Assembly: GCA_965240325.2 (NCBI GenBank)
Contig: OZ251248.1
Coordinates: forward strand, 558,001-622,000
Reading direction: 5' to 3'
DNA length: 64,000 nt
Origin: Rebecca billardiae RCC1528
Lineage: Eukaryota > Protista > Haptophyta
The notes under the pieces were generated by a model, which made no database searches, was not told where the DNA came from, and worked only from the letters and a program-made list of their open reading frames with translations. The stretch's first letter is position 1, and every line of letters begins with the position of its first letter. Positions 1 through 48,572 of the stretch are shown piece after piece. The translations under genes and the position numbers were made by a program.

Positions 1-3000
1 GTGGCGGGCTGGGCGGCGGTGACGGTGGAGGCGACGGCGGTGGGCTCGGCGGCGGTGGGCTTGGCGGCGGGCTCGGCGGTGGGCTCGGCGGCGGGCTCGG
101 CGGCGGGCTCGGCGGCGGTGACGGAGGAGGCGATGGCGGGGGACTCGGAGGCGGGCTTGGCGGTGGCGAAGGCGGTGGGCTTGGCGGCGGGTTCGGCGGA
201 GGGCTAGGTGGCGGGCTTGGTGGCGGGCTCGGCGGCGGGCTTGGGGGGGGCGGGCTCGGTGGAGGGCTGGGCGGCGGGCTGGGCGGAGGCGACGGTGGCG
301 GGACCGGCGGTGGCGAAGGAGGCGGACTTGGTGGTGGACTGGGCGGTGGGCTCGGCGGGGGGCTCGGCGGTGGTGTCGGCGGCGGGCTTGGCGGCGGTGA
401 GGGTGGCGGGCTCGGTGGCGGAGACGGCGGTGGCGATGGAGGTGGGCTCGGTGGCGGGCTCGGCGGCGGGCTCGGCGGCGGGCTCGGCGGCGGCGGGCTG
501 GGCGGCGGGCTGGGCGGCGGGCTGGGCGGCGGGCTCGGCGGCGGGCGCGGCGGAGGGCTTGGTGGAGGGCTTGGAGGCGGACTCGGCGGCGGGCTCGGCG
601 GCGGGCTCGGCGGCGGGCTCGGCGGCGGACTTGGCGGAGGTGGGCTTGGCGGCGGTGACGGTGGCGGGCTCGGCGGTGGCGACGGCGGTGGCGACGGCGG
701 TGGGCTCGGCGGCGGGCTTGGAGGCGGGCTCGGTGGCGGGCTCGGCGGCGGAGGGCTGGGTGGCGGGCTGGGTGGCGGGCTGGGCGGTGGGCTGGGCGGC
801 GGACTCGGTGGCGGGCTCGGCGGAGGGCTGGGCGGCGGGCTCGGCGGCGGGCTCGGCGGCGGCAGCGGCGGCGGGCTCGGCGGCGGGCTCGGCGGCGGGC
901 TCGGCGGTGGGCTCGGTGGTGGGCTCGGAGGTGGGCTCGGAGGCGGTGGGCTGGGTGGCGGGCTGGGCGGCGGGCTGGGCGGAGGCGACGGTGGCGGGAC
1001 CGGCGGTGGCGAGGGGGGCGGACTTGGTGGTGGAATGGGCGGTGGGCTCGGCGGCGGGCTCGGCGGTGGTGACGGCGGCGGACTGGGCGGCGGTGATGGT
1101 GGCGGGCTCGGTGGTGGTGACGGTGGCGGACTCGGCGGCGGTGATGGTGGCGGGCTCGGTGGTGGTGACGGTGGCGGACTCGGCGGCGGTGATGGTGGCG
1201 GGCTCGGTGGTGGTGACGGTGGCGGACTGGGCGGTGGCGGGCTTGGCGGCGGACTCGGCGGCGGCGACGGCGGAGGCGACGGCGGAGGACTCGGAGGAGG
1301 GCTCGGAGGGGGTGACGGCGGCGGCGATGGCGGCGGGCTGGGCGGGGGCGACGGCGGCGGGCTGGGAGGCGGACTCGGTGGCGGGCTCGGCGGCGGGCTT
1401 GGCGGCGGGCTTGGCGGCGGGCTTGGCGGAGGTGGGCTTGGCGGCGGTGACGGCGGCGGGCTCGGCGGCGGAGACGGCGGTGGCGACGGCGGTGGGCTCG
1501 GTGGCGGGCTCGGAGGCGGGCTCGGCGGCGGGCTCGGCGGCGGAGGGCTGGGTGGCGGGCTGGGCGGCGGGCTGGGCGGCGGGCTTGGCGGCGGACTCGG
1601 TGGTGGGCTCGGCGGTGGGCTGGGCGGCGGGCTCGGTGGCGGGCTCGGCGGCGGCAACGGTGGCGGGCTGGGCGGTGGGCTCGGCGGCGGGCTCGGCGGT
1701 GGGCTCGGCGGTGGGCTCGGAGGGGGGCTCGGAGGCGGTGGGCTGGGTGGCGGGCTGGGCGGCGGGCTGGGCGGAGGCGACGGTGGCGGGATCGGCGGTG
1801 GCGAAGGAGGCGGGCTTGGTGGTGGACTGGGCGGCGGGCTCGGCGGCGGGCTCGGCGGTGGTGACGGCGGTGGGCTTGGCGGCGGTGAGGGTGGCGGGCT
1901 CGGCGGCGGAGACGGCGGTGGCGATGGAGGTGGGCTCGGTGGCGGGCTTGGCGGCGGGCTCGGCGGCGGGCTCGGCGGCGGAGGGCTGGGCGGCGGGCTG
2001 GGCGGCGGGCTGGGCGGCGGGCTTGGTGGCGGACTCGGTGGTGGGCTCGGCGGTGGGCTGGGGGGCGGGCTCGGCGGCGGGCTCGGCGGCGGGCTCGGCG
2101 GCGGGCTTGGCGGCGGGCTTGGCGGTGGTGGGCTTGGCGGCGGTGAGGGTGGCGGGCTCGGCGGCGGAGACGGCGGTGGCGACGGCGGTGGGCTCGGTGG
2201 CGGGCTCGGAGGCGGGCTCGGCGGCGGGCTCGGCGGCGGAGGGCTGGGTGGCGGGCTGGGCGGCGGGCTGGGCGGCGGGCTTGGCGGCGGACTCGGTGGT
2301 GGGCTCGGCGGTGGGCTGGGCGGCGGGCTCGGTGGCGGGCTCGGCGGCGGCAACGGTGGCGGGCTGGGTGGTGGGCTCGGCGGCGGGCTCGGCGGTGGGC
2401 TCGGCGGTGGGCTCGGAGGGGGGCTCGGAGGCGGTGGGCTGGGTGGCGGGCTGGGCGGCGGGCTGGGCGGAGGCGACGGTGGCGGGATCGGCGGTGGCGA
2501 AGGAGGCGGGCTTGGTGGTGGACTGGGCGGCGGGCTCGGCGGCGGGCTCGGCGGTGGTGACGGCGGTGGGCTTGGCGGCGGTGATGGTGGCGGGCTCGGC
2601 GGCGGAGACGGCGGTGGCGATGGAGGTGGGCTCGGTGGCGGGCTTGGCGGCGGGCTCGGCGGCGGGCTCGGCGGCGGAGGGCTGGGCGGCGGGCTGGGCG
2701 GCGGGCTGGGCGGCGGGCTTGGTGGCGGACTCGGTGGTGGGCTCGGCGGTGGGCTGGGGGGCGGGCTCGGCGGCGGGCTCGGCGGCGGGCTCGGCGGCGG
2801 GCTTGGCGGCGGGCTTGGCGGTGGTGGGCTTGGCGGCGGTGACGGTGGCGGGCTCGGCGGCGGAGACGGCGGTGGCGACGGCGGTGGGCTCGGTGGCGGG
2901 CTCGGAGGCGGGCTCGGCGGCGGGCTCGGCGGCGGAGGGCTGGGTGGCGGGCTGGGCGGCGGGCTGGGCGGCGGGCTTGGCGGCGGACTCGGTGGTGGGC

Positions 3001-6000
3001 TCGGCGGTGGGCTGGGCGGCGGGCTCGGTGGCGGGCTCGGCGGCGGCAACGGTGGCGGGCTGGGTGGTGGGCTCGGCGGCGGGCTCGGCGGTGGGCTCGG
3101 CGGTGGGCTCGGAGGGGGGCTCGGAGGCGGTGGGCTGGGTGGCGGGCTGGGCGGCGGGCTGGGCGGAGGCGACGGTGGCGGGATCGGCGGTGGCGAAGGA
3201 GGCGGGCTTGGTGGTGGACTGGGCGGCGGGCTCGGCGGCGGGCTCGGCGGTGGTGACGGCGGTGGGCTTGGCGGCGGTGAGGGTGGCGGGCTCGGCGGCG
3301 GAGACGGCGGTGGCGATGGAGGTGGGCTCGGTGGCGGGCTTGGCGGCGGGCTCGGCGGCGGGCTCGGCGGCGGAGGGCTGGGCGGCGGGCTGGGCGGCGG
3401 GCTGGGCGGCGGGCTTGGTGGCGGACTCGGTGGTGGGCTCGGCGGTGGGCTGGGGGGCGGGCTCGGCGGCGGGCTCGGCGGCGGGCTCGGCGGCGGGCTT
3501 GGCGGCGGGCTTGGCGGTGGTGGGCTTGGCGGCGGTGACGGTGGCGGGCTCGGCGGCGGAGACGGCGGTGGCGACGGCGGTGGGCTCGGTGGCGGGCTCG
3601 GAGGCGGGCTCGGCGGCGGGCTCGGCGGCGGAGGGCTGGGTGGCGGGCTGGGCGGCGGGCTGGGCGGCGGGCTTGGCGGCGGACTCGGTGGTGGGCTCGG
3701 CGGTGGGCTGGGCGGCGGGCTCGGTGGCGGGCTCGGCGGCGGCAACGGTGGCGGGCTGGGTGGTGGGCTCGGCGGCGGGCTCGGCGGTGGGCTCGGCGGT
3801 GGGCTCGGAGGGGGGCTCGGAGGCGGTGGGCTGGGTGGCGGGCTGGGCGGCGGGCTGGGCGGAGGCGACGGTGGCGGGATCGGCGGTGGCGAAGGAGGCG
3901 GGCTTGGTGGTGGACTGGGCGGCGGGCTCGGCGGCGGGCTCGGCGGTGGTGACGGCGGTGGGCTTGGCGGCGGTGAGGGTGGCGGGCTCGGCGGCGGAGA
4001 CGGCGGTGGCGATGGAGGTGGGCTCGGTGGCGGGCTTGGCGGCGGGCTCGGCGGCGGGCTCGGCGGCGGAGGGCTGGGCGGCGGGCTGGGCGGCGGGCTG
4101 GGCGGCGGGCTCGGCGGCGGGCGCGGCGGAGGGCTTGGCGGAGGGCTGGGGGGCGGGCTCGGCGGCGGGCTCGGCGGCGGGCTTGGCGGCGGGCTTGGCG
4201 GCGGGCTTGGCGGTGGTGGGCTTGGCGGCGGTGACGGTGGCGGGCTCGGCGGCGGAGACGGCGGTGGCGACGGCGGTGGGCTCGGTGGCGGGCTCGGTGG
4301 CGGGCTCGGCGGCGGGCTCGGCGGCGGAGGGCTGGGTGGCGGGCTGGGCGGCGGGCTGGGCGGCGGGCTTGGCGGCGGACTCGGTGGTGGGCTCGGAGGT
4401 GGGCTGGGCGGCGGGCTCGGTGGCGGGCTCGGCGGCGGCAACGGTGGCGGGCTGGGCGGTGGGCTCGGCGGCGGGCTCGGCGGTGGGCTCGGCGGTGGGC
4501 TTGGAGGGGGGCTCGGAGGCGGTGGGCTGGGTGGCGGGCTGGGCGGCGGGCTGGGCGGAGGCGACGGTGGCGGGATCGGCGGTGGCGAAGGAGGCGGGCT
4601 TGGCGGCGGACTGGGCGGCGGGCTCGGCGGCGGGCTCGGCGGTGGTGACGGCGGTGGGCTTGGCGGCGGTGATGGTGGCGGGCTCGGCGGCGGAGACGGC
4701 GGTGGCGACGGCGGTGGGCTCGGTGGCGGGCTTGGCGGCGGGCTCGGCGGCGGGCTCGGCGGCGGAGGGCTGGGCGGCGGGCTGGGCGGCGGGCTGGGCG
4801 GCGGGCTTGGTGGCGGACTCGGTGGTGGGCTCGGCGGTGGGCTGGGGGGTGGGCTCGGCGGCGGGCTCGGCGGCGGGCTCGGCGGCGGGCTTGGCGGCGG
4901 GCGTGGCGGTGGTGGGCTTGGCGGCGGTGACGGTGGCGGGCTCGGCGGCGGAGACGGCGGTGGCGACGGCGGTGGGCTCGGTGGCGGGCTCGGAGGCGGG
5001 CTCGGCGGCGGGCTCGGCGGCGGAGGGCTGGGTGGCGGGCTGGGCGGCGGGCTGGGCGGCGGGCTGGGCGGCGGACTCGGTGGTGGGCTCGGCGGTGGGC
5101 TGGGTGGCGGGCTCGGTGGCGGGCTCGGCGGCGGCAACGGTGGCGGGCTGGGTGGTGGGCTCGGCGGCGGGCTCGGCGGTGGGCTCGGCGGTGGGCTCGG
5201 AGGGGGGCTCGGAGGCGGTGGGCTGGGTGGCGGGCTGGGCGGCGGGCTGGGCGGAGGCGACGGTGGCGGAATCGGCGGTGGCGAAGGAGGCGGGCTTGGT
5301 GGTGGACTGGGTGGCGGGCTCGGCGGTGGGCTCGGCGGTGGTGACGGCGGTGGGCCTGGCGGCGGTGATGGTGGCGGGCTCGGAGGTGGTGACGGTGGTG
5401 GGCTGGGCGGCGGCGGGCTCGGCGGCGGGCTTGGTGGAGGCAAAGGCGGAGGCGACGGCGGAGGACTCGGAGGAGGAGCCGGCGGTGGTGACGGCGGCGG
5501 CGATGGCGGCGGACTCGGCGGGGGCGACGGTGGCGGACTGGGAGGCGGGCTCGGTGGCGGGCTCGGCGGCGGACTCGGCGGCGGGCTCGGCGGCGGGCTT
5601 GGCGGAGGTGGGCTCGGCGGCGGGGACGGGGGCGGGCTCGGCGGCGGGCTCGGCGGGGGGCTCGGTGGCGGTACTGGAGGCGGGCTCGGCGGCGGAGACG
5701 GCGGTGGAGACGGAGGTGGGCTTGGTGGCGGGCTCGGGGGGGGGCTGGGCGGCGGGCTCGGTGGCGGTGGGCTTGGTGGCGGGCTCGGCGGAGGGCTCGG
5801 CGGCGGGCTCGGCGGAGGGCTCGGCGGTGGCGATGGGGGCGGGCTGGGCGGCGGGCTAGGAGGTGGACTCGGTGGTGGGCTCGGCGGTGGGCTGGGCGGC
5901 GGCGATGGCGGTGGCGGGCTTGGCGGTGGGCTGGGCGGCGGGCTTGGCGGCGGGCTGGGAGGCGGCGAGGGTGGCGGGCTCGGCGGTGGAGATGGAGGCG

Positions 6001-9000
6001 GGCTGGGCGGCGGCTTTGGTGGAGGCGGGCTCGGAGGCGGGGACGGTGGCGGACTGGGTGGCGGGCTCGGCGGCGGGAGCGGAGGTGGAGGGCTTGGCGG
6101 CGGGCTTGGAGGTGGGCTCGGCGGTGGGCTTGGAGGCGGGCTCGGCGGCGGTGATGGCGGCGGGCTCGGCGGTGGGCTCGGCGGCGGTGCGGGCGGCGGG
6201 CTCGGCGGTGGGCTCGGCGGCGGAGACGGCGGCGGTGAAGGCGGCGGGCTCGGTGGTGGACTCGGCGGCGGCTTCGGCGGAGGCGGGCTCGGTGGGGGGC
6301 TCGGCGGAGGGCTCGGCGGCGGGCTCGGCGGAGGGCTCGGCGGTGGCGATGGGGGCGGACTGGGCGGCGGGCTAGGAGGTGGGCTCGGTGGTGGGCTCGG
6401 CGGTGGGCTGGGCGGCGGCGATGGCGGTGGCGGGCTGGGCGGTGGGCTGGGAGGCGGGCTAGGAGGCGGCCTGGGAGGCGGCGAGGGTGGCGGGCTGGGC
6501 GGCGGCGATGGCGGTGGGCTCGGCGGCGGCTTTGGCGGAGGCGGGCTCGGTGGTGGGCTCGGCGGCGGGCTCGGTGGCGGGCTCGGCGGCGGGAGCGGAG
6601 GTGGAGGGCTTGGGGGCGGGCTTGGAGGTGGGCTCGGCGGCGGGCTTGGAGGCGGGCTCGGCGGAGGCGACGGCGGCGGACTCGGTGGCGGGCTCGGCGG
6701 CGGTGAGGGCGGTGGGCTCGGCGGTGGGCTCGGCGGAGGGCTCGGCGGCGGTGAGGGCGGCGGGCTTGGCGGTGGACTCGGTGGTGGCTTCGGCGGCGGC
6801 GGGCTCGGTGGCGGGCTCGGCGGTGGGCTCGGCGGCGGGCTCGGCGGGGGACTCGGAGGCGGGCTCGGAGGCGGGCTTGGTGGCGGCGACGGCGGCGGGC
6901 TCGGCGGCGGACTCGGTGGCGGGCTCGGCGGCGGCAGTGGCGGCGGCGGGCTCGGCGGCGGGCTCGGCGGCGGGCTCGGTGGTGGGCTCGGCGGTGGGCT
7001 GGGCGGCGGTGATGGCGGCGGGCTCGGCGGGGGGCTCGGCGGCGGACTGGGTGGCGGGCTCGGCGGCGGGCTTGGCGGCGGCATTGGCGGAGGCGGACTC
7101 GGCGGCGGGCTCGGCGGTGGGCTCGGCGGTGGGCTCGGAGGCGGGCTCGGGGGCGGCGACGGCGGCGGGCTGGGCGGGGGGCTGGGAGGTGGGCTCGGCG
7201 GTGGGCTCGGTGGTGGGCTGGGCGGCGGCGATGGCGGTGGCGGGCTCGGTGGCGGGCTCGGTGGCGGGCTAGGTGGAGGGCTGGGCGGCGGCGAGGGCGG
7301 TGGGCTCGGTGGAGGGCTGGGCGGTGGGCTGGGCGGTGGTTCGGGCGGGGGCGGACTGGGCGGCGGACTCGGCGGTGGGCTCGGCGGCGGGCTCGGCGGC
7401 GGGCTCGGCGGTGGCGACGGGGGCGGACTGGGCGGCGGGCTAGGAGGTGGGCTCGGCGGTGGGCTCGGCGGTGGGCTTGGCGGCGGCGACGGCGGTGGCG
7501 GGCTGGGCGGCGGGCTAGGTGGTGGGCTGGGGGGCGGGCTCGGCGGCGGGCTCGGCGGCGGGCTCGGCGGCGGCGATGGCGGGGGGCTGGGTGGCGGCTT
7601 TGGTGGAGGCGGGCTCGGCGGCGGGCTTGGCGGCGGGCTTGGCGGCGGGCTCGGCGGCGGCAGGGGGGGTGGCGGGCTCGGTGGCGGGCTCGGTGGTGGG
7701 CTCGGCGGTGGGCTCGGAGGCGGGCTCGGCGGCGGTGATGGCGGCGGGCTCGGCGGTGGGCTCGGCGGCGGTGCGGGCGGCGGGCTCGGCGGTGGGCTCG
7801 GCGGCGGAGACGGCGGCGGTGAAGGCGGCGGGCTCGGTGGTGGACTCGGCGGCGGCTTCGGCGGAGGCGGGCTTGGTGGGGGGCTCGGCGGCGGGCTCGG
7901 CGGCGGGCTCGGCGGCGGACTCGGAGGGGGGCTCGGAGGCGGGCTCGGCGGCGGGCTCGGCGGAGGGCTCGGCGGTGGCGATGGGGGCGGACTAGGCGGC
8001 GGGCTAGGAGGTGGACTCGGTGGTGGGCTCGGCGGTGGGCTGGGCGGCGGTGATGGCGGTGGCGGGCTGGGCGGTGGGCTTGGCGGCGGGCTGGGAGGCG
8101 GGCTGGGAGGCGGCGAGGGTGGCGGGCTGGGCGGCGGCGATGGCGGTGGGCTCGGCGGCGGCTTTGGTGGAGGCGGGCTCGGAGGCGGGGACGGTGGCGG
8201 ACTGGGTGGCGGGCTCGGCGGCGGGAGCGGAGGTGGAGGGCTTGGCGGCGGGCTTGGAGGTGGGCTCGGAGGCGGGCTTGGAGGCGGACTTGGCGGAGGT
8301 GACGGCGGCGGACTCGGTGGCGGGCTCGGCGGCGGTGAGGGCGGTGGGCTTGGCGGTGGGCTCGGCGGAGGGCTCGGCGGCGGTGATGGCGGCGGGCTCG
8401 GCGGTGGGCTCGGCGGCGGCTTCGGCGGAGGCGGGCTCGGTGGGGGGCTCGGCGGTGGGCTCGGCGGCGGGCTCGGCGGGGGACTCGGAGGCGGGCTCGG
8501 AGGCGGGCTCGGCGGTGGCGACGGGGGCGGGCTTGGCGGCGGGCTCGGCGGCGGGCTCGGCGGAGGCAGCGGCGGCGGCGGGCTCGGCGGCGGGCTCGGT
8601 GGCGGGCTTGGCGGCGGGCTGGGAGGAGGGCTGGGCGGCGGTGATGGCGGCGGGCTCGGAGGTGGGCTCGGCGGTGGACTGGGTGGCGGACTCGGCGGCG
8701 GGCTCGGCGGCGGACTCGGCGGAGGCGGACTCGGCGGTGGGCTCGGCGGCGGGCTCGGCGGCGGGCTTGGCGGCGGGCTCGGCGGCGGCGATGGGGGCGG
8801 ACTGGGCGGCGGGCTAGGAGGTGGGCTTGGCGGTGTGCTCGGCGGTGGGCTGGGCGGCGGCGATGGCGGTGGCGGGCTCGGCGGCGGGCTGGGGGGTGGG
8901 CTGGGAGGTGGGCTGGGCGGAGGCGAGGGTGGCGGGCTCGGCGGCGGCGATGGCGGCGGGCTGGGCGGCGGCTTCGGTGGAGGCGGGCTCGGAGGTGGGG

Positions 9001-12000: not shown

Positions 12001-15000
12001 GTGGCGACGGGGGCGGACTGGGCGGCGGGCTAGGAGGTGGGCTCGGCGGCGGGCTCGGTGGCGGGCTGGGCGGCGGCGATGGCGGTGGCGGGCTTGGCGG
12101 CGGGCTTGGCGGCGGGCTGGGAGGCGGGCTGGGAGGCGGCGAGGGTGGCGGGCTCGGTGGCGGCGATGGCGGGGGGCTCGGCGGCGGCTTTGGTGGCGGT
12201 GGGCTCGGAGGCGGGCTTGGCGGCGGGCTTGGTGGCGGGCTTGGCGGCGGGCTTGGTGGCGGGCTTGGCGGCGGGCTTGGTGGCGGGCTTGGCGGCGGGA
12301 GCGGCGGTGGCGGGCTTGGCGGCGGGCTCGGAGGTGGGCTCGGCGGCGGGCTTGGAGGAGGGCTGGGCGGCGGGCTCGGCGGTGGGCTCGGTGGCGGGCT
12401 CGGCGGCGGTGAGGGCGGTGGGCTCGGCGGTGGGCTCGGCGGCGGTGATGGCGGCGGTGAGGGCGGCGGGCTCGGCGGTGGGCTCGGCGGCGGCTTCGGC
12501 GGAGGCGGGCTCGGTGGGGGGCTCGGCGGCGGGCTCGGCGGCGGGCTCGGCGGGGGACTCGGAGGCGGGCTCGGCGGCGGCGAGGGCGGTGGCGACGGGG
12601 GCGGGCTCGGCGGCGGGCTTGGCGGCGGGCTCGGCGGCGGCAGCGGCGGAGGCGGACTCGGCGGTGGGCTCGGCGGCGGGCTCGGCGGCGGGCTTGGCGG
12701 CGGGCTCGGAGGCGGAGATGGCGGCGGGCTCGGAGGTGGGCTCGGCGGTGGACTGGGTGGCGGGCTCGGGGGCGGGCTCGGCGGCGGCAGCGGCGGAGGC
12801 GGACTCGGCGGTGGGCTCGGCGGCGGGCTCGGCGGCGGGCTCGGCGGAGGGCTCGGGGGCGGCGACGGCGGCGGGCTGGGCGGGGGGCTGGGGGGTGGGC
12901 TCGGCGGTGGGCTCGGTGGTGGGCTGGGTGGCGGCGATGGCGGTGGCGGGCTCGGCGGCGGACTCGGCGGCGGGCTAGGAGGTGGGCTGGGCGGCGGCGA
13001 GGGTGGTGGGCTCGGTGGTGGGCTTGGTGGCGGACTCGGGGGTGGCGATGGCGGAGGGCTTGGCGGCGGAGACGGCGGGGGGCTTGGCGGCGGCTTTGGT
13101 GGCGGCGGGCTCGGAGGCGGGGACGGTGGTGGACTAGGTGGCGGGCTCGGCGGAGGCAGCGGCGGAGGCGGGCTCGGCGGCGGGCTCGGCGGTGGGCTCG
13201 GCGGTGGGCTTGGAGGCGGGCTCGGTGGAGGCGACGGCGGCGGACTCGGTGGCGGGCTCGGCGGCGGTGAGGGCGGTGGGCTCGGCGGTGGACTCGGCGG
13301 CGGAGACGGCGGCGGAGACGGCGGCGGGCTCGGTGGTGGACTCGGCGGCGGCTTCGGCGGAGGCGGGCTCGGTGGGGGGCTCGGCGGAGGGCTCGGCGGC
13401 GGGCTCGGCGGAGGGCTCGGCGGTGGCGATGGGGGCGGACTGGGCGGCGGGCTAGGAGGTGGGCTCGGCGGTGGGCTCGGCGGTGGGCTGGGCGGCGGCG
13501 ATGGCGGTGGTGGGCTTGGCGGTGGGCTTGGCGGCGGGCTGGGAGGCGGGCTGGGCGGAGGCGAGGGTGGCGGGCTCGGCGGCGGAGATGGCGGCGGGCT
13601 GGGCGGCGGCCTCGGTGGAGGCGGGCTCGGCGGCGGGGACGGTGGCGGACTGGGTGGCGGGCTCGGCGGAGGCAGCGGCGGAGGCGGGCTCGGCGGTGGG
13701 CTCGGCGGCGGGCTTGGCGGCGGGCTTGGAGGCGGGCTCGGCGGCGGGCTGGGCGGCGGTGACGGCGGCGGGCTCGGCGGCGGGCTGGGCGGGGGGCTCG
13801 GCGGCGGGCTCGGTGGCGGGCTCGGCGGCGGGCTCGGCGGAGGGCTCGGAGGTGGGCTCGGCGGTGGCGTCGGCGGTGGTGGGCTCGGGGGTGGCGACGG
13901 TGGAGGGCTCGGAGGCGGGCTCGGCGGTGGGCTCGGCGGAGGGGACGGCGGCGGGCTGGGTGGCGGGCTGGGCGGGGGGCTGGGCGGCGGGCTCGGTGGC
14001 GGGCTCGGTGGTGGCAGTGGCGGTGGCGGGCTCGGCGGCGGACTCGGCGGTGGGCTCGGTGGCGGCGAGGGCGGTGGACTGGGCGGCGGCGACGGCGGCG
14101 GGCTCGGTGGCGGGCTGGGTGGCGGGCTCGGTGGCGGTGACGGTGGCGGGCTCGGCGGTGGGCTCGGCGGAGGCGGGCTTGGCGGTGGGCTGGGCGGGGG
14201 GCTGGGCGGTGGGCTCGGTGGCGGGCTCGGCGGCGGCGACGGTGGCGGACTAGGCGGCGGGCTCGGCGGCGGCGACGGTGGTGGGCTCGGCGGCGGACTC
14301 GGCGGGGGGCTCGGTGGTGGCGGGCTCGGCGGCGGGCTGGGCGGCGGGCTGGGAGGCGGGCTGGGCGGTGGGCTGGGCGGCGGGCTCGGCGGTGGGCTCG
14401 GAGGCGGCGACGGTGGCGGCGATGGCGGCGGGCTGGGTGGCGGCGAAGGCGGCGGGCTGGGCGGCGGCGATGGCGGAGGCGGGCTGGGCGGTGGCGACGG
14501 CGGCGGGCTAGGAGGCGGGCTCGGCGGAGGGCTGGGCGGCGGCGACGGTGGAGGGCTTGGCGGCGGGCTCGGCGGTGGGCTCGGCGGAGGGGACGGCGGC
14601 GGGCTAGGCGGCGGGCTCGGCGGTGGGCTTGGCGGCGGGCTTGGCGGCGGGCTCGGTGGTGGCAGTGGCGGTGGCGGGCTCGGCGGCGGACTTGGCGGTG
14701 GGCTCGGCGGCGGCGAGGGCGGTGGGCTGGGAGGCGGCGACGGCGGTGGGCTCGGCGGCGGCGAGGGCGGTGGGCTGGGAGGCGGCGACGGCGGCGGGCT
14801 CGGTGGCGGGCTGGGTGGCGGGCTCGGTGGCGGTGACGGTGGCGGGCTCGGCGGTGGGCTCGGCGGAGGCGGGCTTGGCGGTGGGCTGGGCGGCGGGCTG
14901 GGCGGTGGGCTGGGCGGCGGGCTCGGCGGCGGCGACGGTGGCGGGCTCGGCGGCGGGCTCGGCGGCGGCGACGGTGGTGGGCTTGGCGGCGGACTCGGCG

Positions 15001-17790
15001 GGGGGCTCGGTGGTGGCGGGCTCGGCGGCGGGCTGGGCGGCGGGCTGGGAGGCGGGCTGGGCGGTGGGCTGGGCGGCGGGCTCGGCGGTGGGCTCGGAGG
15101 CGGCGACGGTGGCGGCGATGGCGGCGGGCTGGGCGGCGGCGAAGGCGGCGGGCTGGGCGGCGGCGATGGCGGAGGCGGGCTCGGCGGTGGCGACGGCGGC
15201 GGGCTAGGAGGCGGGCTCGGCGGAGGGCTGGGCGGCGGCGACGGTGGAGGGCTTGGCGGCGGGCTCGGCGGTGGGCTCGGCGGAGGGGACGGCGGCGGGC
15301 TAGGCGGCGGGCTCGGCGGTGGGCTTGGCGGCGGGCTTGGCGGCGGGCTCGGTGGTGGCAGTGGCGGTGGCGGGCTCGGCGGCGGACTCGGCGGTGGGCT
15401 CGGCGGCGGCGAGGGCGGTGGGCTGGGAGGCGGCGACGGCGGCGGGCTCGGTGGCGGGCTGGGTGGCGGGCTCGGTGGCGGTGACGGCGGCGGGCTCGGC
15501 GGTGGGCTCGGCGGAGGCGGGCTTGGCGGTGGGCTGGGCGGCGGGCTGGGCGGTGGGCTGGGCGGCGGGCTCGGCGGCGGCGACGGTGGCGGGCTAGGCG
15601 GCGGGCTCGGCGGCGGCGACGGTGGTGGGCTTGGCGGCGGACTCGGCGGGGGGCTCGGTGGTGGCGGGCTCGGCGGCGGGCTGGGCGGCGGGCTGGGAGG
15701 CGGGCTGGGCGGTGGGCTGGGCGGCGGGCTCGGCGGTGGGCTCGGAGGCGGCGACGGTGGCGGCGATGGCGGCGGGCTGGGTGGCGGCGAAGGCGGCGGG
15801 CTGGGCGGCGGCGATGGCGGAGGCGGGCTCGGCGGTGGCGACGGCGGCGGGCTAGGAGGCGGGCTCGGCGGAGGGCTGGGCGGCGGCGACGGTGGAGGGC
15901 TTGGCGGCGGGCTCGGCGGTGGGCTCGGCGGAGGGGACGGCGGCGGGCTGGGTGGTGGGCTGGGCGGGGGGCTGGGCGGCGGGCTGGGTGGCGGGCTCGG
16001 TGGTGGCAGTGGCGGTGGCGGGCTCGGCGGCGGACTCGGCGGTGGGCTCGGTGGCGGCGAGGGCGGTGGACTGGGCGGCGGCGACGGCGGCGGGCTCGGT
16101 GGCGGGCTGGGTGGCGGGCTCGGTGGCGGTGACGGTGGCGGGCTCGGCGGTGGGCTCGGCGGAGGCGGGCTTGGCGGTGGGCTGGGCGGCGGGCTGGGCG
16201 GTGGGCTGGGCGGCGGGCTCGGCGGCGGCGACGGTGGCGGGCTCGGCGGCGGGCTCGGCGGCGGCGACGGTGGCGGGCTTGGCGGCGGACTCGGCGGGGG
16301 GCTCGGTGGTGGCGGGCTGGGCGGCGGGCTGGGCGGCGGGCTGGGAGGCGGACTGGGCGGTGGGCTGGGCGGCGGGCTCGGCGGTGGGCTCGGAGGCGGC
16401 GACGGTGGCGGCGATGGCGGCGGGCTGGGTGGCGGCGAAGGCGGCGGGCTTGGCGGCGGCGATGGCGGAGGCGGGCTGGGCGGTGGCGACGGCGGCGGAC
16501 TCGGAGGCGGGCTCGGCGGAGGGCTGGGCGGCGGCGAAGGTGGCGGGCTCGGCGGTGGGCTGGGTGGCGGGCTTGGTGGCGGGCTTGGTGGCGGACTCGG
16601 TGGCGGCAGTGGCGGTGGCGGGCTCGGCGGCGGACTCGGCGGTGGGCTCGGCGGTGGCGAGGGCGGTGGACTGGGCGGCGGCGACGGCGGCGGGCTCGGT
16701 GGCGGGCTGGGTGGCGGGCTTGGTGGCGGCGACGGTGGCGGGCTCGGCGGTGGGCTCGGCGGAGGCGGGCTCGGCGGTGGGCTGGGCGGCGGGCTCGGCG
16801 GTGGGCTTGGCGGCGGGCTCGGCGGCGGCGACGGTGGCGGACTAGGCGGTGGGCTGGGCGGCGGCGAAGGCGGCGGGCTGGGTGGTGGGCTCGGCGGCGG
16901 GCTCGGCGGTGGCGGGCTCGGCGGAGGGCTCGGCGGCGGACTGGGCGGCGGGCTGGGCGGTGGCGACGGTGGCGGGCTCGGCGGCGGGCTCGGTGGAGGG
17001 CTCGGCGGCGGACTCGGCGGTGGGCTCGGTGGTGGCGACGGCGGTGGGCTCGGCGGCGGCGACGGCGGTGGCGGGCTCGGCGGCGGACTCGGCGGTGGGC
17101 TCGGTGGTGGCGAGGGCGGTGGACTGGGCGGCGGCGACGGCGGTGGGCTCGGTGGCGGGCTCGGTGGTGGGCTCGGTGGCGGCGACGGTGGAGGGCTCGG
17201 TGGTGGGCTCGGCGGAGGCGGGCTCGGCGGCGGGCTGGGCGGCGGGCTGGGCGGCGGGCTGGGCGGCGGGCTCGGCGGCGGCGACGGTGGCGGGCTGGGC
17301 GGCGGGCTGGGCGGCGGCGAAGGCGGCGGGCTGGGTGGCGGACTCGGCGGCGGGCTGGGCGGTGGCGGGCTGGGCGGTGGGCTTGGCGGCGGGCTGGGTG
17401 GTGGGCTCGGCGGCGGGCTCGGCGGCGGCGAGGGCGGCGGGCTCGGCGGCGGCGAGGGCGGCGGGCTGGGCGGTGGACTCGGCGGCGGGCTCGGCGGCGG
17501 GCTCGGCGGCGGAGGGCTTGGCGGCGGGCTCGGCGGCGGCGACGGCGGCGGGCTCGGCGGTGGGCTGGGTGGCGGGCTCGGAGGCGGCGATGGCGGCGGG
17601 CTTGGTGGCGGTGACGGCGGCGGGCTGGGTGGCGGACTTGGCGGCGGGCTTGGCGGCGGGCTCGGCGGCGGCGGGCTCGGCGGCGGGCTCGGCGGCGGGC
17701 TCGGCGGCGGGCTCGGTGGCGGGCTCGGCGGCGGGCTCGGCGGTGGGCTTGGCGGCGGCGATGGCGGCGGACTCGGAGGTGGGCTCGGGC
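1..17790. repeat. Coding 12-bp (occasionally 15-bp) tandem repeat, plus-strand consensus GGCGGCGGGCTC
   Basis: Visible throughout; encodes SPPP/SPPPP on the minus strand. Confidence 0.97.
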
Positions 17791-18124
17791 TCGGTTGGCC
17801 AGACACCAGTGGCGCGGCTGAGAGCCCCACGAGCACGCCCAGCGCCAGAGCCAGCCACCCCGGACGGAAGGGTGTGCTGGCGATTCGTCTGGGGCGGCCG
17901 GATGACGGTGCCGCTGACGCTTGCCGCGCAGCGGGCGCTGCGCGGCGCGGCGACTCGGCGGAGCTTGGCGGGGACGGACGCTCGGGGCGGTGGCTCTGAG
18001 CGGGCAAGCGCGAATTGGGCTGCGGCGGCTGCGGCGCGAAGCCACAGGCGCCTGGTCGCATTTCGCCCGTTGCTCGCGCCTTGCGGCGCGACTCCACGGT
18101 TGCAGAACCACGACGGGCAACCAT
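2..18124 (-). CDS. Giant (SPPP)n extensin/pherophorin-like proline-rich surface glycoprotein, at least 6,040 aa, 3' end beyond the window
   Basis: Manual minus-strand translation from ATG 18124 (or in-frame ATG 18061): MVARRGS...PFRPGWLALALGVLVGLSAAPLVSG-QPSPSPPPSPPP..., with no stop to position 1. In the plus-strand shadow ORF, L (CT always preceded by G/A), D and E all map to Ser (AGY/TCN) and every G maps to Pro (CCN). Variation is therefore synonymous in this minus frame. Confidence 0.9.
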   Translation of the reverse strand, partial: MVARRGSATVESRRKARATGEMRPGACGFAPQPPQPNSRLPAQSHRPERPSPPSSAESPRRAAPAARQASAAPSSGRPRRIASTPFRPGWLALALGVLVGLSAAPLVSGQPSPSPPPSPPPSPPPSPPPSPPPSPPPSPPPSPPPSPPPSPPPPSPPPSPPPSPPPSPPPSPPPSPPPSPPPSPPPSPPPSPPPSPPPSPPPSPPPPSPPPSPPPSPPPSPPPSPPPSPPPSPPPSPPPSPPPSPPPSPPPSPPPPSPPPSPPPSPPPSPPPSPPPSPPPSPPPSPPPSPPPSPPPSPPPSPPPPSPPPSPPPSPPPSPPPSPPPSPPPSPPPSPPPSPPPSPPPSPPPSPPPPSPPPSPPPSPPPSPPPSPPPSPPPSPPPSPPPSPPPSPPPSPPPSPPPSPPPPSPPPSPPPSPPPSPPPSPPPSPPPSPPPSPPPSPPPSPPPSPPPSPPPPSPPPSPPPSPPPSPPPSPPPSPPPSPPPSPPPSPPPSPPPSPPPSPPPPLPPPSPPPSPPPSPPPSPPPSPPPSPPPSPPPSPPPSPPPSPPPSPPPPSPPPSPPPSPPPSPPPSPPPSPPPSPPPSPPPSPPPSPPPSPPPSPPPSPPPPSPPPSPPPSPPPSPPPSPPPSPPPSPPPSPPPSPPPSPPPSPPPSPPPPSPPPSPPPSPPPSPPPSPPPSPPPSPPPSPPPSPPPSPPPSPPPSPPPPLPPPSPPPSPPPSPPPSPPPSPPPSPPPSPPPSPPPSPPPSPPPSPPPSPPPSPPPSPPPSPPPPSPPPSPPPSPPPSPPPSPPPSPPPSPPPSPPPSPPPSPPPSPPPSPPPSPPPPSPPPSPPPSPPPSPPPSPPPSPPPSPPPSPPPSPPPSPPPSPPPSPPPPSPPPSPPPSPPPSPPPSPPPSPPPSPPPSPPPSPPPSPPPSPPPSPPPPLPPPSPPPSPPPSPPPSPPPSPPPSPPPSPPPSPPPSPPPSPPPSPPPSPPPSPPPSPPPSPPPPSPPPSPPPSPPPSPPPSPPPSPPPSPPPSPPPSPPPSPPPSPPPSPPPSPPPPSPPPSPPPSPPPSPPPSPPPSPPPSPPPSPPPSPPPSPPPSPPPSPPPPSPPPSPPPSPPPSPPPSPPPSPPPSPPPSPPPSPPPSPPPSPPPSPPPSPPPSPPPSPPPSPPPPLPPPSPPPSPPPSPPPSPPPSPPPSPPPSPPPSPPPSPPPSPPPSPPPSPPPSPPPSPPPSPPPPSPPPSPPPSPPPSPPPSPPPSPPPSPPPSPPPSPPPSPPPSPPPSPPPSPPPPSPPPSPPPSPPPSPPPSPPPSPPPSPPPSPPPSPPPSPPPSPPPSPPPPSPPPSPPPSPPPSPPPSPPPSPPPSPPPSPPPSPPPSPPPSPPPSPPPPLPPPSPPPSPPPSPPPSPPPSPPPSPPPSPPPSPPPSPPPSPPPSPPPPTPPPSPPPSPPPSPPPSPPPSPPPSPPPSPPPSPPPSPPPSPPPSPPPSPPPSPPPSPPPSPPPPLPPPSPPPSPPPSPPPSPPPPRPPPSPPPSPPPSPPPSPPPSPPPSPPPSPPPSPPPPSPPPSPPPSPPPSPPPSPPPSPPPSPPPSPPPSPPPSPPPSPPPSPPPPKPPPSPPPSPPPSPPPSPPPSPPPSPPPSPPPSPPPSPPPSPPPSPPPSPPPSPPPSPPPSPPPPLPPPSPPPSPPPSPPPSPPPPKPPPSPPPSPPPSPPPSPPPSPPPSPPPSPPPSPPPSPPPSPPPSPPPSPPPPSPPPSPPPSPPPSPPPSPPPSPPPSPPPSPPPSPPPSPPPSPPPSPPPPLPPPSPPPSPPPSPPPSPPPSPPPSPPPSPPPSPPPSPPPSPPPSPPPPLPPPSPPPSPPPSPPPSPPPSPPPSPPPSPPPSPPPSPPPSPPPSPPPPKPPPSPPPSPPPSPPPSPPPSPPPSPPPSPPPSPPPSPPPSPPPSPPPSPPPSPPPSPPPSPPPPLPPPSPPPSPPPSPPPSPPPSPPPSPPPSPPPSPPPPKPPPSPPPSPPPSPPPSPPPSPPPSPPPSPPPSPPPPSPPPSPPPSPPPSPPPSPPPSPPPSPPPSPPPSPPPSPPPSPPPSPPPPKPPPSPPPSPPPSPPPSPPPSPPPSPPPSPPPSPPPSPPPSPPPSPPPSPPPSPPPSPPPSPPPPLPPPSPPPSPPPSPPPSPPPSPPPSPPPSPPPSPPPSPPPSPPPSPPPPKPPPSPPPSPPPSPPPSPPPSPPPSPPPSPPPSPPPSPPPSPPPSPPPSPPPSPPPSPPPSPPPPLPPPSPPPSPPPSPPPSPPPPKPPPSPPPSPPPRPPPSPPPSPPPSPPPSPPPSPPPPSPPPSPPPSPPPSPPPSPPPSPPPSPPPSPPPSPPPSPPPSPPPSPPPPKPPPSPPPSPPPSPPPSPPPSPPPSPPPSPPPSPPPSPPPSPPPSPPPSPPPSPPPSPPPSPPPPKPPPSPPPSPPPSPPPSPPPPRPPPSPPPSPPPSPPPSPPPSPPPSPPPSPPPSPPPPSPPPSPPPSPPPSPPPSPPPSPPPSPPPSPPPSPPPSPPPSPPPSPPPPKPPPSPPPSPPPSPPPSPPPSPPPSPPPSPPPSPPPSPPPSPPPSPPPSPPPSPPPSPPPSPPPPLPPPSPPPSPPPSPPPSPPPSPPPSPPPSPPPTPPPSPPPSPPPSPPPPKPPPSPPPSPPPSPPPSPPPSPPPSPPPSPPPSPPPSPPPSPPPSPPPSPPPSPPPSPPPSPPPPLPPPSPPPSPPPSPPPSPPPPKPPPSPPPSPPPSPPPSPPPSPPPSPPPSPPPSPPPPSPPPSPPPSPPPSPPPSPPPSPPPSPPPSPPPSPPPSPPPSPPPSPPPPKPPPSPPPSPPPSPPPSPPPSPPPSPPPSPPPSPPPSPPPSPPPSPPPPLPPPSPPPSPPPSPPPSPPPPKPPPSPPPSPPPSPPPSPPPSPPPSPPPSPPPSPPPPSPPPSPPPSPPPSPPPSPPPSPPPSPPPSPPPSPPPSPPPSPPPSPPPPKPPPSPPPSPPPSPPPSPPPSPPPSPPPSPPPSPPPSPPPSPPPSPPPSPPPSPPPSPPPSPPPPKPPPSPPPSPPPSPPPSPPPPKPPPSPPPSPPPSPPPSPPPSPPPSPPPSPPPSPPPPSPPPSPPPSTPPSPPPSPPPSPPPSPPPSPPPSPPPSPPPSPPPSPPPPSPPPSPPPSPPPSPPPSPPPSPPPSPPPSPPPSPPPSPPPSPPPSPPPPLPPPSPPPSPPPSPPPSPPPSPPPSPPPSPPPSPPPSPPPSPPPSPPPPKPPPSPPPSPPPSPPPSPPPSPPPSPPPSPPPSPPPSPPPSPPPSPPPSPPPSPPPSPPPSPPPPLPPPSPPPSPPPSPPPSPPPPKPPPSPPPSPPPSPPPSPPPSPPPSPPPSPPPSPPPPSPPPSPPPSPPPSPPPSPPPSPPPSPPPSPPPSPPPSPPPSPPPSPPPSPPPSPPPSPPPSPPPPKPPPSPPPSPPPSPPPSPPPSPPPSPPPAPPPSPPPSPPPSPPPSPPPSPPPSPPPSPPPSPPPPLPPPSPPPSPPPSPPPSPPPPKPPPSPPPSPPPSPPPSPPPSPPPSPPPSPPPSPPPPSPPPSPPPSPPPSPPPSPPPSPPPSPPPSPPPSPPPSPPPSPPPSPPPPEPPPSPPPSPPPSPPPSPPPSPPPSPPPSPPPSPPPPSPPPSPPPSPPPSPPPSPPPSPPPSPPPSPPPSPPPSPPPSPPPSPPPPMPPPSPPPSPPPSPPPSPPPSPPPSPPPSPPPSPPPSPPPSPPPSPPPPLPPPSPPPSPPPSPPPSPPPSPPPSPPPSPPPSPPPSPPPSPPPSPPPPKPPPSPPPSPPPSPPPSPPPSPPPSPPPSPPPSPPPSPPPSPPPSPPPSPPPSPPPSPPPSPPPPLPPPSPPPSPPPSPPPSPPPPKPPPSPPPSPPPSPPPSPPPRPPPSPPPSPPPSPPPPSPPPSPPPSPPPSPPPSPPPSPPPSPPPSPPPSPPPSPPPSPPPSPPPPKPPPSPPPSPPPSPPPSPPPSPPPSPPPAPPPSPPPSPPPSPPPSPPPSPPPSPPPSPPPSPPPPLPPPSPPPSPPPSPPPSPPPPKPPPSPPPSPPPSPPPSPPPSPPPSPPPSPPPSPPPPSPPPSPPPSPPPSPPPSPPPSPPPSPPPSPPPSPPPSPPPSPPPSPPPPSPPPSPPPSPPPSPPPSPPPSPPPSPPPVPPPSPPPSPPPSPPPSPPPSPPPPSPPPSPPPSPPPSPPPSPPPSPPPSPPPSPPPSPPPSPPPAPPPSPPPSPPPLPPPSPPPSPPPPSPPPSPPPSPPPSPPPGPPPSPPPSPPPSPPPSPPPSPPPSPPPIPPPSPPPSPPPSPPPSPPPPSPPPSPPPSPPPSPPPSPPPSPPPLPPPSPPPSPPPSPPPSPPPSPPPSPPPSPPPSPPPSPPPPSPPPSPPPSPPPSPPPSPPPSPPPSPPPSPPPSPPPPRPPPSPPPSPPPSPPPSPPPSPPPSPPPSPPPSPPPSPPPSPPPSPPPPSPPPSPPPSPPPSPPPSPPPSPPPSPPPSPPPSPPPSPPPSPPPSPPPSPPPSPPPSPPPIPPPSPPPSPPPSPPPSPPPPSPPPSPPPSPPPSPPPSPPPSPPPLPPPSPPPSPPPSPPPSPPPSPPPSPPPSPPPSPPPSPPPPSPPPSPPPSPPPSPPPSPPPSPPPSPPPSPPPSPPPPSPPPSPPPSPPPSPPPSPPPSPPPSPPPRPPPSPPPSPPPSPPPSPPPPSPPPSPPPSPPPSPPPSPPPSPPPSPPPSPPPSPPPSPPPSPPPSPPPSPPPSPPPSPPPIPPPSPPPSPPPSPPPSPPPPSPPPSPPPSPPPSPPPSPPPSPPPLPPPSPPPSPPPSPPPSPPPSPPPSPPPSPPPSPPPSPPPPSPPPSPPPSPPPSPPPSPPPSPPPSPPPSPPPSPPPPSPPPSPPPSPPPSPPPSPPPSPPPSPPPSPPPSPPPSPPPSPPPSPPPPSPPPSPPPSPPPSPPPSPPPSPPPSPPPSPPPSPPPSPPPSPPPSPPPSPPPSPPPSPPPIPPPSPPPSPPPSPPPSPPPPSPPPSPPPSPPPSPPPSPPPSPPPLPPPSPPPSPPPSPPPSPPPSPPPSPPPSPPPSPPPSPPPPSPPPSPPPSPPPSPPPSPPPSPPPSPPPSPPPSPPPPSPPPSPPPSPPPSPPPSPPPSPPPSPPPSPPPSPPPSPPPSPPPSPPPPSPPPSPPPSPPPSPPPSPPPSPPPSPPPSPPPSPPPSPPPSPPPSPPPSPPPSPPPSPPPIPPPSPPPSPPPSPPPSPPPPSPPPSPPPSPPPSPPPSPPPSPPPLPPPSPPPSPPPSPPPSPPPSPPPSPPPSPPPSPPPSPPPPSPPPSPPPSPPPSPPPSPPPSPPPSPPPSPPPSPPPPSPPPSPPPSPPPSPPPSPPPSPPPSPPPSPPPSPPPSPPPSPPPSPPPPSPPPSPPPSPPPSPPPSPPPSPPPSPPPSPPPSPPPSPPPSPPPSPPPSPPPSPPPSPPPIPPPSPPPSPPPSPPPSPPPPSPPPSPPPSPPPSPPPSPPPSPPPLPPPSPPPSPPPSPPPSPPPSPPPSPPPSPPPSPPPSPPPPSPPPSPPPSPPPSPPPSPPPSPPPSPPPSPPPSPPPPSPPPSPPPSPPPSPPPSPPPSPPPSPPPSPPPSPPPSPPPSPPPSPPPSPPPSPPPSPPPSPPPPSPPPSPPPSPPPSPPPSPPPSPPPSPPPSPPPSPPPSPPPSPPPSPPPSPPPSPPPSPPPSPPPIPPPSPPPSPPPVPPPSPPPSPPPSPPPSPPPPSPPPSPPPSPPPSPPPSPPPSPPPLPPPSPPPSPPPSPPPSPPPSPPPSPPPSPPPSPPPSPPPPSPPPSPPPSPPPSPPPSPPPSPPPSPPPSPPPSPPPPSPPPSPPPSPPPSPPPSPPPSPPPSPPPRPPPSPPPSPPPSPPPSPPPPSPPPSPPPSPPPSPPPSPPPSPPPSPPPSPPPSPPPTPPPSPPPSPPPSPPPSPPPSPPPVPPPSPPPSPPPSPPPSPPPPSPPPSPPPSPPPSPPPNPPPSPPPSPPPSPPPSPPPSPPPSPPPSPPPSPPPSPPPSPPPSPPPPSPPPSPPPSPPPSPP
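1390..5350. repeat. Higher-order 696-bp (232-aa) repeat, about 6 copies
   Basis: The CAA of the rare marker GGCAACGG is at 1655, 2351, 3047, 3743, 4439 and 5135, exactly 696 bp apart. The GGATCGG marker shows the same spacing (1791, 2487). Boundaries are approximate. Confidence 0.9.
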
Positions 18125-18272
18125 CTGACTACCGGTGCAAGAGGAGGCCCGTCGCGGCGGCGTCACGCTCAGCTCGCTCGCTCGGCGGCAGCCAGTTATT
18201 TTAGGAGCAGGAGGAGAAACCGGCTCGTGGGTAAATGACCCATATCTGCCCATCCGACGCCCTCGCTGCGTT

Positions 18273-18298
18273 CGCATTCCGATATATATCGGAATGCG
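18273..18298. promoter_or_regulatory. Perfect 26-bp palindrome CGCATTCCGATATATATCGGAATGCG about 150 bp upstream of the SPPP gene
   Basis: Sequence equals its own reverse complement and has a TATATA core. A regulatory role is inferred only from position. Confidence 0.4.
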
Positions 18299-18439
18299 GT
18301 TGACATCATATCCGTTGAAGCTTCCGATGAATATGAGTGTGGGCAATTGGTAGTATAGTACTCACCGGGTATTCAAGCCGCATGGGTAACACTGCCCGGA
18401 GCCGCCATCGTGCCCTCTGCTCGGCGGGTGCGCATCAGC

Positions 18440-18620
18440 CGCTTGAGCGGCCAAGAGCGAGGGCACGCAGGCCACCATCGCAGTTTTCGCGTTGCGGAGC
18501 TCGTGCGCCTCGTCGAACACCCAGAGCTGCCGTGGAGAGAGAAAGTACCTGGCCGTTTCAGAGAGCACGAACGCGTGCGCACCCGTCCTGAAGGCGGCGA
18601 TATTCTCGTCCGCTCGGACG
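18440..18620 (-). pseudogene. SNF2-type DEAH helicase fragment (motif II only)
   Basis: LWVFDEAHELRNAKT resembles SNF2 motif II (hhhDEAHxhKN). No Walker A or C-terminal helicase motifs found nearby. Confidence 0.35.
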
Positions 18621-18673
18621 GACCGAGCCGGCGCACTTCTTGATCGGGACCGCAGTTTAGCGCATATCGCCGT

Positions 18674-18727
18674 CCCACTGTATCACCAGCGGTGTCTCTG
18701 GTGATACATCTCTGGTGATACAGTGGG
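18674..18727. repeat. 16-bp inverted repeat with internal tandem duplication
   Basis: CCCACTGTATCACCAG (18674-18689) pairs with CTGGTGATACAGTGGG (18712-18727); TCTCTGGTGATACA occurs twice in tandem. Confidence 0.75.
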
Positions 18728-30769: not shown

Positions 30770-30773
<4 letters not shown>

Positions 30774-30868
<95 letters not shown>

Positions 30869-30879
30869 CGATATGTGTC

Positions 30880-30937
<58 letters not shown>
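30774..30937. repeat. Two adjacent (TA)n microsatellites
   Basis: Direct reading; other TA arrays at about 19329, 20040, 30460 and 51168/59632. Confidence 0.95.
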
Positions 30938-43797: not shown

Positions 43798-44264
43798 TAG
43801 GCCCAGTCGTCGCGGCGCGGAGCCGCGGCTGAGTGCCGGACGACTACTACGGGCCCTGAGCACCAATCATTCCAGCAGCATGACGACCCGCACAGTGACA
43901 CCGCCTGCTCAGCCTCAGCCGCACGGCGCGCCGGCCACTAGTGACCGGCGGACCGCGGCATTAAGATTTAATAAGGCCGCAGGGCCGGCGCGCGCCGGCC
44001 GGCCGCGTCGGGCCACTTCATTGCGGCGGAAACTTGCAACCGCGGCCAACCCGACTGACGGCGCGCGGGCACGGATCCGGGATCGGCGCGCAGCCCGCGG
44101 ACGAGCCGCCGACCGGCCAGCACATGCCAATCGGGGGTAGTAGGGAGAGGTTCCGCTGTGGCGTATGGCCCGCTTGGGTGACTTCCGCTCGGTTCGATCA
44201 GAATGGCACCAGTCGTCGCCACTTGCAGGCTGCTGTGCAACCGAATCAGTAGTAGTAGCAGCCT

Positions 44265-48347: not shown

Positions 48348-48572
48348 TATAATTATTACGACTACTTAATATTATATTGAAATTGCCGCGTAAACGACAA
48401 TCAATTATATTATCATCATCATCGTGATCGTCATCACACGGTCCTGTGCGACGTGACGACTAGACTCTGCCCGGCCGATGCGCCGGGCGCGCCGATCACG
48501 ATGGGTCCTGCGTCGGGCGGCGTGGCGGCCGCTCGCAAGACCATCCCGCGCAGTCGTCACGCGACGACTCGG

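Follow-up and report, generated by a model that had tools for sequence, protein, structure and literature searches.

A minus-strand frame for a giant Ser-Pro-Pro-Pro repeat protein in the haptophyte Rebecca billardiae, a candidate gene for a secreted surface thread

A stretch of 64,000 nucleotides (nt) from the haptophyte Rebecca billardiae RCC1528 (assembly GCA_965240325.2, contig OZ251248.1, positions 558,001 to 622,000) was analysed; this whole stretch is called the window below, and positions are given in its own numbering. At its start, on the minus strand (2-18124), lies an open frame that reads as an almost pure repeat of Ser-Pro-Pro-Pro (SPPP). That the SPPP frame of the repeat array codes for protein, or did so until very recently, finds good support in the way in which its units vary. 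With moderate confidence, the frame is read here as the 5′ part, probably in a single exon, of a real gene, the product of which would be a secreted, sugar-cased surface thread at least 1.8 µm long. What would be new is the occurrence, outside the green lineage, of a polyproline filament of the hydroxyproline-rich glycoprotein (HRGP) type that is so extremely long and pure.

The open frame and its repeat array

The frame runs from the ATG at 18124 to base 2 of the window, a distance of 6,041 codons without a stop, and leaves the window at its start with the repeat still continuing at base 1; the closest in-frame stop 5′ of the ATG is at position 18364. An earlier note on this DNA had reported an uninterrupted minus-strand frame of at least 6,040 amino acids (aa) that was absent from the track of open reading frames (ORFs). 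The count bears this out, and the absence is explained by the ORF listing, which omits ORFs that run off the end of the sequence. The first 17.8 kb of the window have a GC content of 0.82-0.84 and a plus-strand GC skew of +0.44, against 0.54-0.81 and no skew elsewhere, and Tandem Repeats Finder recognised a single array at 3-17788 (12-nt unit, ∼1,453 copies, 74% matches, 147-nt super-period). Three of the six frames are free of stops across this array: the SPPP frame, minus frame 0 (rich in Arg, Ala and His) and the antisense plus frame 2. An open frame alone is thus weak evidence here, since composition by itself opens three of them; the real evidence is the pattern of variation.

The repeat part begins at about aa 111-113 and comprises 5,929 aa, 75.5% of them Pro and 23.1% Ser, in agreement with the earlier estimate of at least 5,900 aa that were ∼75% Pro and 25% Ser. 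Its 1,455 units are 12 or 15 nt long (a lone 9-nt unit is cut by the window start); all length variants among them are multiples of 3, and not a single frameshift was found in 17.8 kb. SPPP (1,253 units) and SPPPP (117) predominate, the others being LPPP (29), KPPP (25), RPPP (7), IPPP (7), a few other XPPP and one STPP. Residues that are neither Ser nor Pro number 82, and all of them occupy the Ser slot except for one Pro-to-Thr change (the STPP unit, at 8836); Tyr, Cys and His do not occur among the 5,929 repeat residues. Ser is specified by AGC (981 codons), AGT (124), TCG (159), TCA (66), TCT (31) and TCC (11), and Pro by CCG (62%), CCA (21%), CCC (9%) and CCT (8%).

Within the window the array is made up of three zones, each with higher-order repeats of its own, mutually diverged, and all keeping a perfect CCN periodicity. 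Zone 1 (aa 113-1418; 13871-17788, minus strand) consists of SPPP and SPPPP units with a higher-order period of ∼600-700 nt and bears Leu marks every 200-232 aa. Zone 2 (aa 1419-4126; 5747-13870, minus strand) contains all 25 Lys residues, which always appear as SPPPP-KPPP and are most often 86 aa apart. Zone 3 (aa 4127-6041; 2-5746, minus strand) is formed by a 696-nt (232-aa) repeat, the copies of which are ∼99% identical and have one Ile and one Leu each.

Evidence for constraint on the protein

The earlier note had remarked that substitutions in the array are almost all synonymous, including switches of Ser between AGY and TCN codons, and counting confirmed both observations. Only one of ∼4,475 Pro positions is replaced, and wobble bases depart from the consensus in 33-41% of units. 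The units fall into 173 distinct DNA types, 142 of which are 12 nt long; in these 142 types no variation is seen at the first two positions of any of the three Pro codons (six positions in all), and each wobble position is occupied by all four bases. The chance that random changes over 12 positions would always spare those six Pro-codon positions is of the order of 0.5^141. Changes from CCG to CCA, which result from CpG deamination on one strand, are frequent (952 codons), while the change from CCG to CTG, the equally likely outcome of deamination on the other strand, was found at none of the Pro positions. Ser is present in both of its unconnected codon families (AGY 1,105, TCN 267), and the Thr or Cys intermediates between them are nearly absent.

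The array consists of recently amplified higher-order repeats, so that the events are not all independent and raw variant counts are inflated; for this reason, the young differences between near-identical copies were examined. In 300-nt blocks that have a paralogous block at least 93% identical, 415 synonymous sites were found to differ, compared with 17 non-synonymous sites. Between five copies of the 696-nt repeat that each lie within 4% of their consensus, 21 codon variants are synonymous and 2 are non-synonymous (P = 2.8e-10 against a neutral share of 10/36), and both of the latter are Ser-to-Arg changes in the Ser slot. As far as sequence comparison goes, the anatomy of the frame and purifying selection on its SPPP reading can be regarded as established. 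The locus is a clean natural case in which a repetitive protein has been kept and its DNA scrambled by synonymous codons.

Among public sequencing runs a sole match was found, a run that is not on record as RNA and that holds 10% of the words of 17800-19300; it is of low coverage, is available as contigs only, and comes from a relative or from a mixed sample. A 234-nt contig of the relative spans 17978-18207. Of its differences from the window, 1 substitution falls in the 147 nt that follow the ATG, and 3 substitutions and 3 indels (of 1, 4 and 1 nt) fall in the 83 nt that precede it (comparison of the two sides of 18124, Fisher P = 0.0097). This pattern, seen in one low-depth contig, fits a coding boundary near 18124. 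The codon for Met1 (18122-18124, minus strand) is the most upstream plausible ATG of the open frame, and the indels in the relative's contig that are not multiples of 3 lie only upstream of it. As a separate observation, many small contigs of this run (X1) pile up on the first SPPP units (17700-17800), where their summed depth reaches 73 against 0-6 elsewhere, indicating that related arrays are abundant in that sample; these contigs continue from the SPPP units into an unlike repeat rich in Gly codons.

The N-terminus and the proposed surface thread

The array is preceded by an N-terminal region (aa 1-88; 17861-18124, minus strand) that is rich in Pro, Ala and Arg and basic, with 17 Lys or Arg residues against 4 Asp or Glu, and by the only hydrophobic stretch, WLALALGVLVGLSAAPLVSG (aa 90-109; 17798-17857, minus strand), the Kyte-Doolittle 19-residue mean of which reaches 2.0. 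A basic N-terminus of ∼90 aa and a hydrophobic segment before the array had both been described in the earlier note and were recovered here. Start codon, basic stretch and hydrophobic segment are located exactly at the 5′ edge of the array. From its hydropathy, the segment is a candidate signal-peptide core or type II signal anchor. The hydrophobic core is followed by SAAPLVSG, with a possible cleavage site between VSG and Q (V at -3, G at -1, then Q); cleavage site and topology were deduced from the (-3,-1) and positive-inside rules. The segment looks more like a signal-peptide core plus cleavage region than like a full membrane helix, and the basic stretch upstream would also fit a type II signal anchor.

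Searches of protein families with the predicted product gave little. Pfam produced no match for the N-terminus, and for aa 1-1200 no family at E ≤ 1, extensin models included, although composition filters may hide such matches. The word-index homologue search with the whole protein (region 1-600) returned 3 weak matches, none with any XPn run, which were set aside as unrelated; a blank in this search says little, given that composition filters act on SPPP-type sequence. The feature search of the ESM Atlas with aa 1-1000 gave no usable match.

According to the mechanism proposed, the product would enter the secretory pathway by means of the single hydrophobic segment (aa 90-109), and a nearly unbroken Ser-Pro-Pro-Pro chain of at least 5,929 residues would follow. 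If it is modified like the HRGPs of green algae and plants, its prolines would undergo prolyl 4-hydroxylation and then O-arabinosylation, and its serines O-galactosylation. The result would be a sugar-cased polyproline-II thread, located at the cell surface or beyond it and measuring at least 1.8 µm along its contour, that could serve as a hair, a tether or a spacer stalk. It is from the analogy with such systems that we infer that the protein is secreted, modified in this way, extended in shape and placed at the surface, and on the same footing the interpretation as a surface thread appears plausible. Regarding length, 5,929 × 0.31 nm gives 1,838 nm. The ∼1.8 µm of the earlier note thus holds as arithmetic, but the word 'rod' used there would overstate the stiffness of so long a molecule; 'semi-flexible thread' would be the apter name for a chain of 1.8 µm.

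The closest published analogue appears to be MST3 of Chlamydomonas reinhardtii, the core of the ciliary mastigoneme, which provides the ciliary hairs with a polyproline core of roughly 0.9 µm (Dai et al., Cell 2024, PMC11015965). In the MST3 helix, Ser is galactosylated, every Pro is hydroxylated and glycosylated, and the proline repeats act as a length ruler; cryo-electron microscopy (cryo-EM) found such helices to be fully glycosylated and to span hundreds of nm (PMC11015965). The N-terminal 429 residues of MST3 form a free glycosylated thread of ∼140 nm at the distal end, for which 0.31 nm per residue predicts 133 nm, and cryo-EM measured 146 nm (PMC11015965). The SPPP protein would resemble MST3, whose hydroxyproline-rich polyproline-II helix spans close to one micrometre, in being a single polypeptide and in beginning almost immediately with bare Ser/Pro helix-forming sequence (at least 5,929 aa, 75.5% Pro). 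It differs in that its bare array, with at least 5,929 residues, is ∼14 times the MST3 free tip and ∼2 times the whole mastigoneme, and in that this array is nearly pure SPPP, whereas MST3 has 42 complex proline-rich repeats; furthermore, its gene is from a haptophyte and MST3 from a green alga. MST3 has a PKD2-like membrane anchor and a partner, MST1, whereas the SPPP frame has been read only as far as the window edge, and the likeness is one of layout. Chlamydomonas has a set of PKD2-like proteins that combine polyproline regions with LRR or SEA domains (PMC11015965). The earlier note was right in calling the array far longer than typical extensins, but near-micrometre polyproline filaments made of a single polypeptide had already been published, MST3 being the case in point.

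The sexual agglutinins of Chlamydomonas, SAG1 and SAD1, have shafts a few hundred nm long. These shafts use PPSPX-type motifs and have globular head domains on them, unlike the SPPP protein, in which no such domain is visible in 6,041 codons. Together with the wall protein GP1, the agglutinins are presented as fibrous HRGPs with polyproline shafts (Ferris et al. 2001, 2005, as cited in PMC8777248); like the product proposed here, they are very large surface proteins that display a glycosylated polyproline-II shaft on the membrane (PMC2113723).

Plant extensins (HRGPs of the Ser-Hyp3-5 type, Hyp being hydroxyproline) have in common with the SPPP protein a repeat unit of Ser plus 3-4 Pro (1,253 SPPP, 117 SPPPP) and an expected entry into the secretory pathway. 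Unlike the cross-linking extensins, with their YXY and VYK motifs, the array has no Tyr and would undergo no isodityrosine cross-linking, and we know of no wall into which the protein would be cross-linked as extensins are. It is also far longer than typical extensins, and has no Pfam extensin match over the range searched, where the filters mentioned above may have hidden one. The modification chemistry of HRGPs is plausibly present in haptophytes, as these have an ExAD-like GT47 (PMC5371791; PMC4769139); the GT47 closest to the extensin arabinosyltransferase ExAD is found in Emiliania huxleyi and Chrysochromulina (PMC5371791). In E. huxleyi, the extensin-like Ser-(Pro)3-4 protein EhG42278.1 was detected by proteomics in the coccolith-protein and coccosphere sets (Skeffington et al. 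2023, PMC10290126), and haptophytes therefore do make Ser-(Pro)n proteins. It has been proposed to reside in the lumen of the coccolith vesicle, with a role in base-plate assembly that is likewise only proposed (PMC10290126). The SPPP protein shares with EhG42278.1, itself detected as a protein, the repeat motif and the haptophyte host; unlike the SPPP protein, EhG42278.1 is not described in PMC10290126 as having giant length, and the likeness is one of motif, not of sequence alignment.

If expressed, the array would be among the longest continuous polyproline-II sequences we know of, and the extensin/HRGP building principle would be used at the micrometre scale outside the green lineage. A thread of ∼2 µm would, if real, amount to a sizeable fraction of the diameter of a small algal cell. 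The periodic Lys of zone 2 could be unmodified kinks or docking marks, and they may also be hitch-hikers of repeat amplification. It is possible, though we put it forward only tentatively, that this non-green alga makes single-polypeptide, sugar-cased threads of ∼2 µm or longer as surface or flagellar hairs or tethers, that the Lys marks (86 aa, ∼27 nm) and the Leu/Ile marks (232 aa, ∼72 nm) serve as a docking or kink ruler in the manner of the MST3 repeats, and that the thread is one of a lineage-specific family. Haptophyte surfaces (scales, hairs, the coccolith-holding layer) are, to our knowledge, poorly understood at the protein level, and a family of giant SPPP threads would give concrete candidates for their structures. 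The value of this locus on its own is limited, as it is cut at the window start and the case for a gene is drawn from sequence.

Alternative explanations and neighbouring features

Several observations weigh against a real gene for a secreted thread. The wobble GC of the array is ∼0.71, far below the GC content at third codon positions (GC3) of 0.96-1.0 seen in every clear gene of the window (31.1-34.2, 36.1-42.5, 48.6-50.9, 57.1-59.3 and 63.5-64.0 kb). Because of this low value, gene finders based on GC3 would miss SPPP arrays or choose the wrong frame. One reading is that whatever drives GC3 elsewhere has little hold on this gene, be it through low recombination, low expression or CpG decay; another is that scrambled codons are advantageous in breaking up repetition at the DNA level (among the 1,455 units, at most 4 identical 12-mers follow one another). 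In the N-terminal region GC is flat over the three codon positions (0.74/0.74/0.72), with no coding GC signal, and the 13 kb upstream of the array are transposon-like and without a clear exon. Hidden upstream exons were considered and rejected, as the stretch from 18.1 to 31 kb has no GC3-periodic segment; nor do the RTX-like repeats, rich in Gly and Asp, at 24.6-25.5 kb qualify as such exons, because they read on the plus strand. No ATG occurs in any frame between the second in-frame one (Met22; 18059-18061, minus strand) and the hydrophobic segment. Unless an unseen upstream exon is spliced in, the segment thus lies 67 (from Met22) to 88 (from Met1) aa inward, which is atypical for a cleaved signal peptide, and its uninterrupted core of ∼13 residues is short for a membrane anchor. 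Relatives were sought by way of the non-repeat N-terminus, as the earlier note had proposed, and none was detected: HMMER with the N-terminal 112 aa gave 0 matches among 1.84 billion representative proteins, and a back-translated search of the JGI metagenome contigs gave 598 pattern matches, of which 0 were confirmed. The sequencing-run search returned no RNA run containing the stretch. Elsewhere in the window, a 200-N gap (51491-51690) is flanked by an 8.3-kb tandem block, the two copies of which (43251-51490 and 51715-59954) are 100% identical and carry a doubled set of ORFs (45.0-50.4 kb, 53.5-58.9 kb). The block was most probably doubled by an error of scaffolding or assembly and not in the genome itself, and for this reason the array length needs read support. 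Lastly, in-register gene conversion between units imports only variants that are already synonymous, so current selection is not strictly proven.

Much of this would also be expected if the array were a recently dead or never-expressed copy, i.e. a segment of a functional SPPP-rod gene that was duplicated into transposon-rich DNA and expanded by unequal crossing-over, its coding look persisting because there has been too little time for decay and part of its length possibly stemming from assembly. The low wobble GC is the main argument for such a young relic, as it is near the local non-coding GC and unlike that of the real genes. The orphan N-terminus lacking a coding GC signature, the transposon-like 5′ flank, the very young higher-order repeats (∼99% identical), the RNA not found among the sequencing runs and the artefact elsewhere in the assembly all point in the same direction. 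We nevertheless judge a dead copy rather unlikely. G+C-rich DNA is slippage-prone, yet 17.8 kb of it have accumulated neither frameshifts nor stops; the variants between repeat copies that are 96-99% identical are still 21:2 in favour of synonymous changes; the CCN periodicity is perfect in all three zones in spite of their mutual divergence; and a start codon and a hydrophobic segment are rightly placed at the beginning of the frame.

A second alternative accepts the gene as real and does away with the secreted thread: the hydrophobic segment would not be a signal for the endoplasmic reticulum (ER), and the array would be a giant intracellular proline-rich scaffold for binders of the SH3, WW or profilin type. 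The distance of the segment from any start (67-88 residues) and its short core speak for this. We consider it improbable, since the 17 Lys or Arg residues upstream (positive-inside), the hydrophobic stretch and then the small residues (VSG) fit ER targeting, and since the cytosolic proline-rich scaffolds known to us are short and mixed in sequence. Moreover, O-glycosylated extracellular helices are built on just this motif, pure SPPP(P) (PMC11015965; PMC4769139).

The third alternative, in which the array would be read from the plus strand as a glycine-rich (L/D/E)GGG protein, is hardly credible. Plus frame 2 is stop-free through the entire array and shares its wobble positions with the SPPP frame, so that its Gly codons (GGN) are equally 'conserved' and Pro conservation cannot separate the strands. 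Its variable slot, however, would be occupied by Leu in 1,107 units, by Asp in 203 and by Glu in 64, the AGY/TCN switch being silent only in the SPPP frame. Moreover, no start or signal is visible on the plus strand within the window, whereas on the minus strand a start codon and a hydrophobic segment stand where the array begins. The minus-strand SPPP reading thus appears much the better of the two, and the selection on the protein claimed in the earlier note finds its support in that reading.

Four other features of the window were recorded. Some 600 nt upstream of the start codon, the sequence at ∼18700-18770 is palindromic over a short distance and has the motif 'GTATCACCAGAGA' twice, together with an inverted copy of it; it may represent a hairpin or the end of a small transposon. 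The Gly/Asp-rich repeats mentioned above (24588-25513, plus strand) are nonapeptide-like and spread over several short ORFs without a strong GC3 signal; the region may be a decayed or intron-rich gene. At 39148-42018 (minus strand) there is a channel gene of the cyclic-nucleotide-gated type, with Ion_trans, Ion_trans_2 and cyclic-nucleotide-binding domains and a GC3 of 0.98. Its best public relative is an MMETSP transcript of only 60% identity, and hence the proteins of this organism are not in the public protein collection. Finally, a (TA)n microsatellite of ∼83 copies occupies 30770-30937, within very GC-rich DNA.

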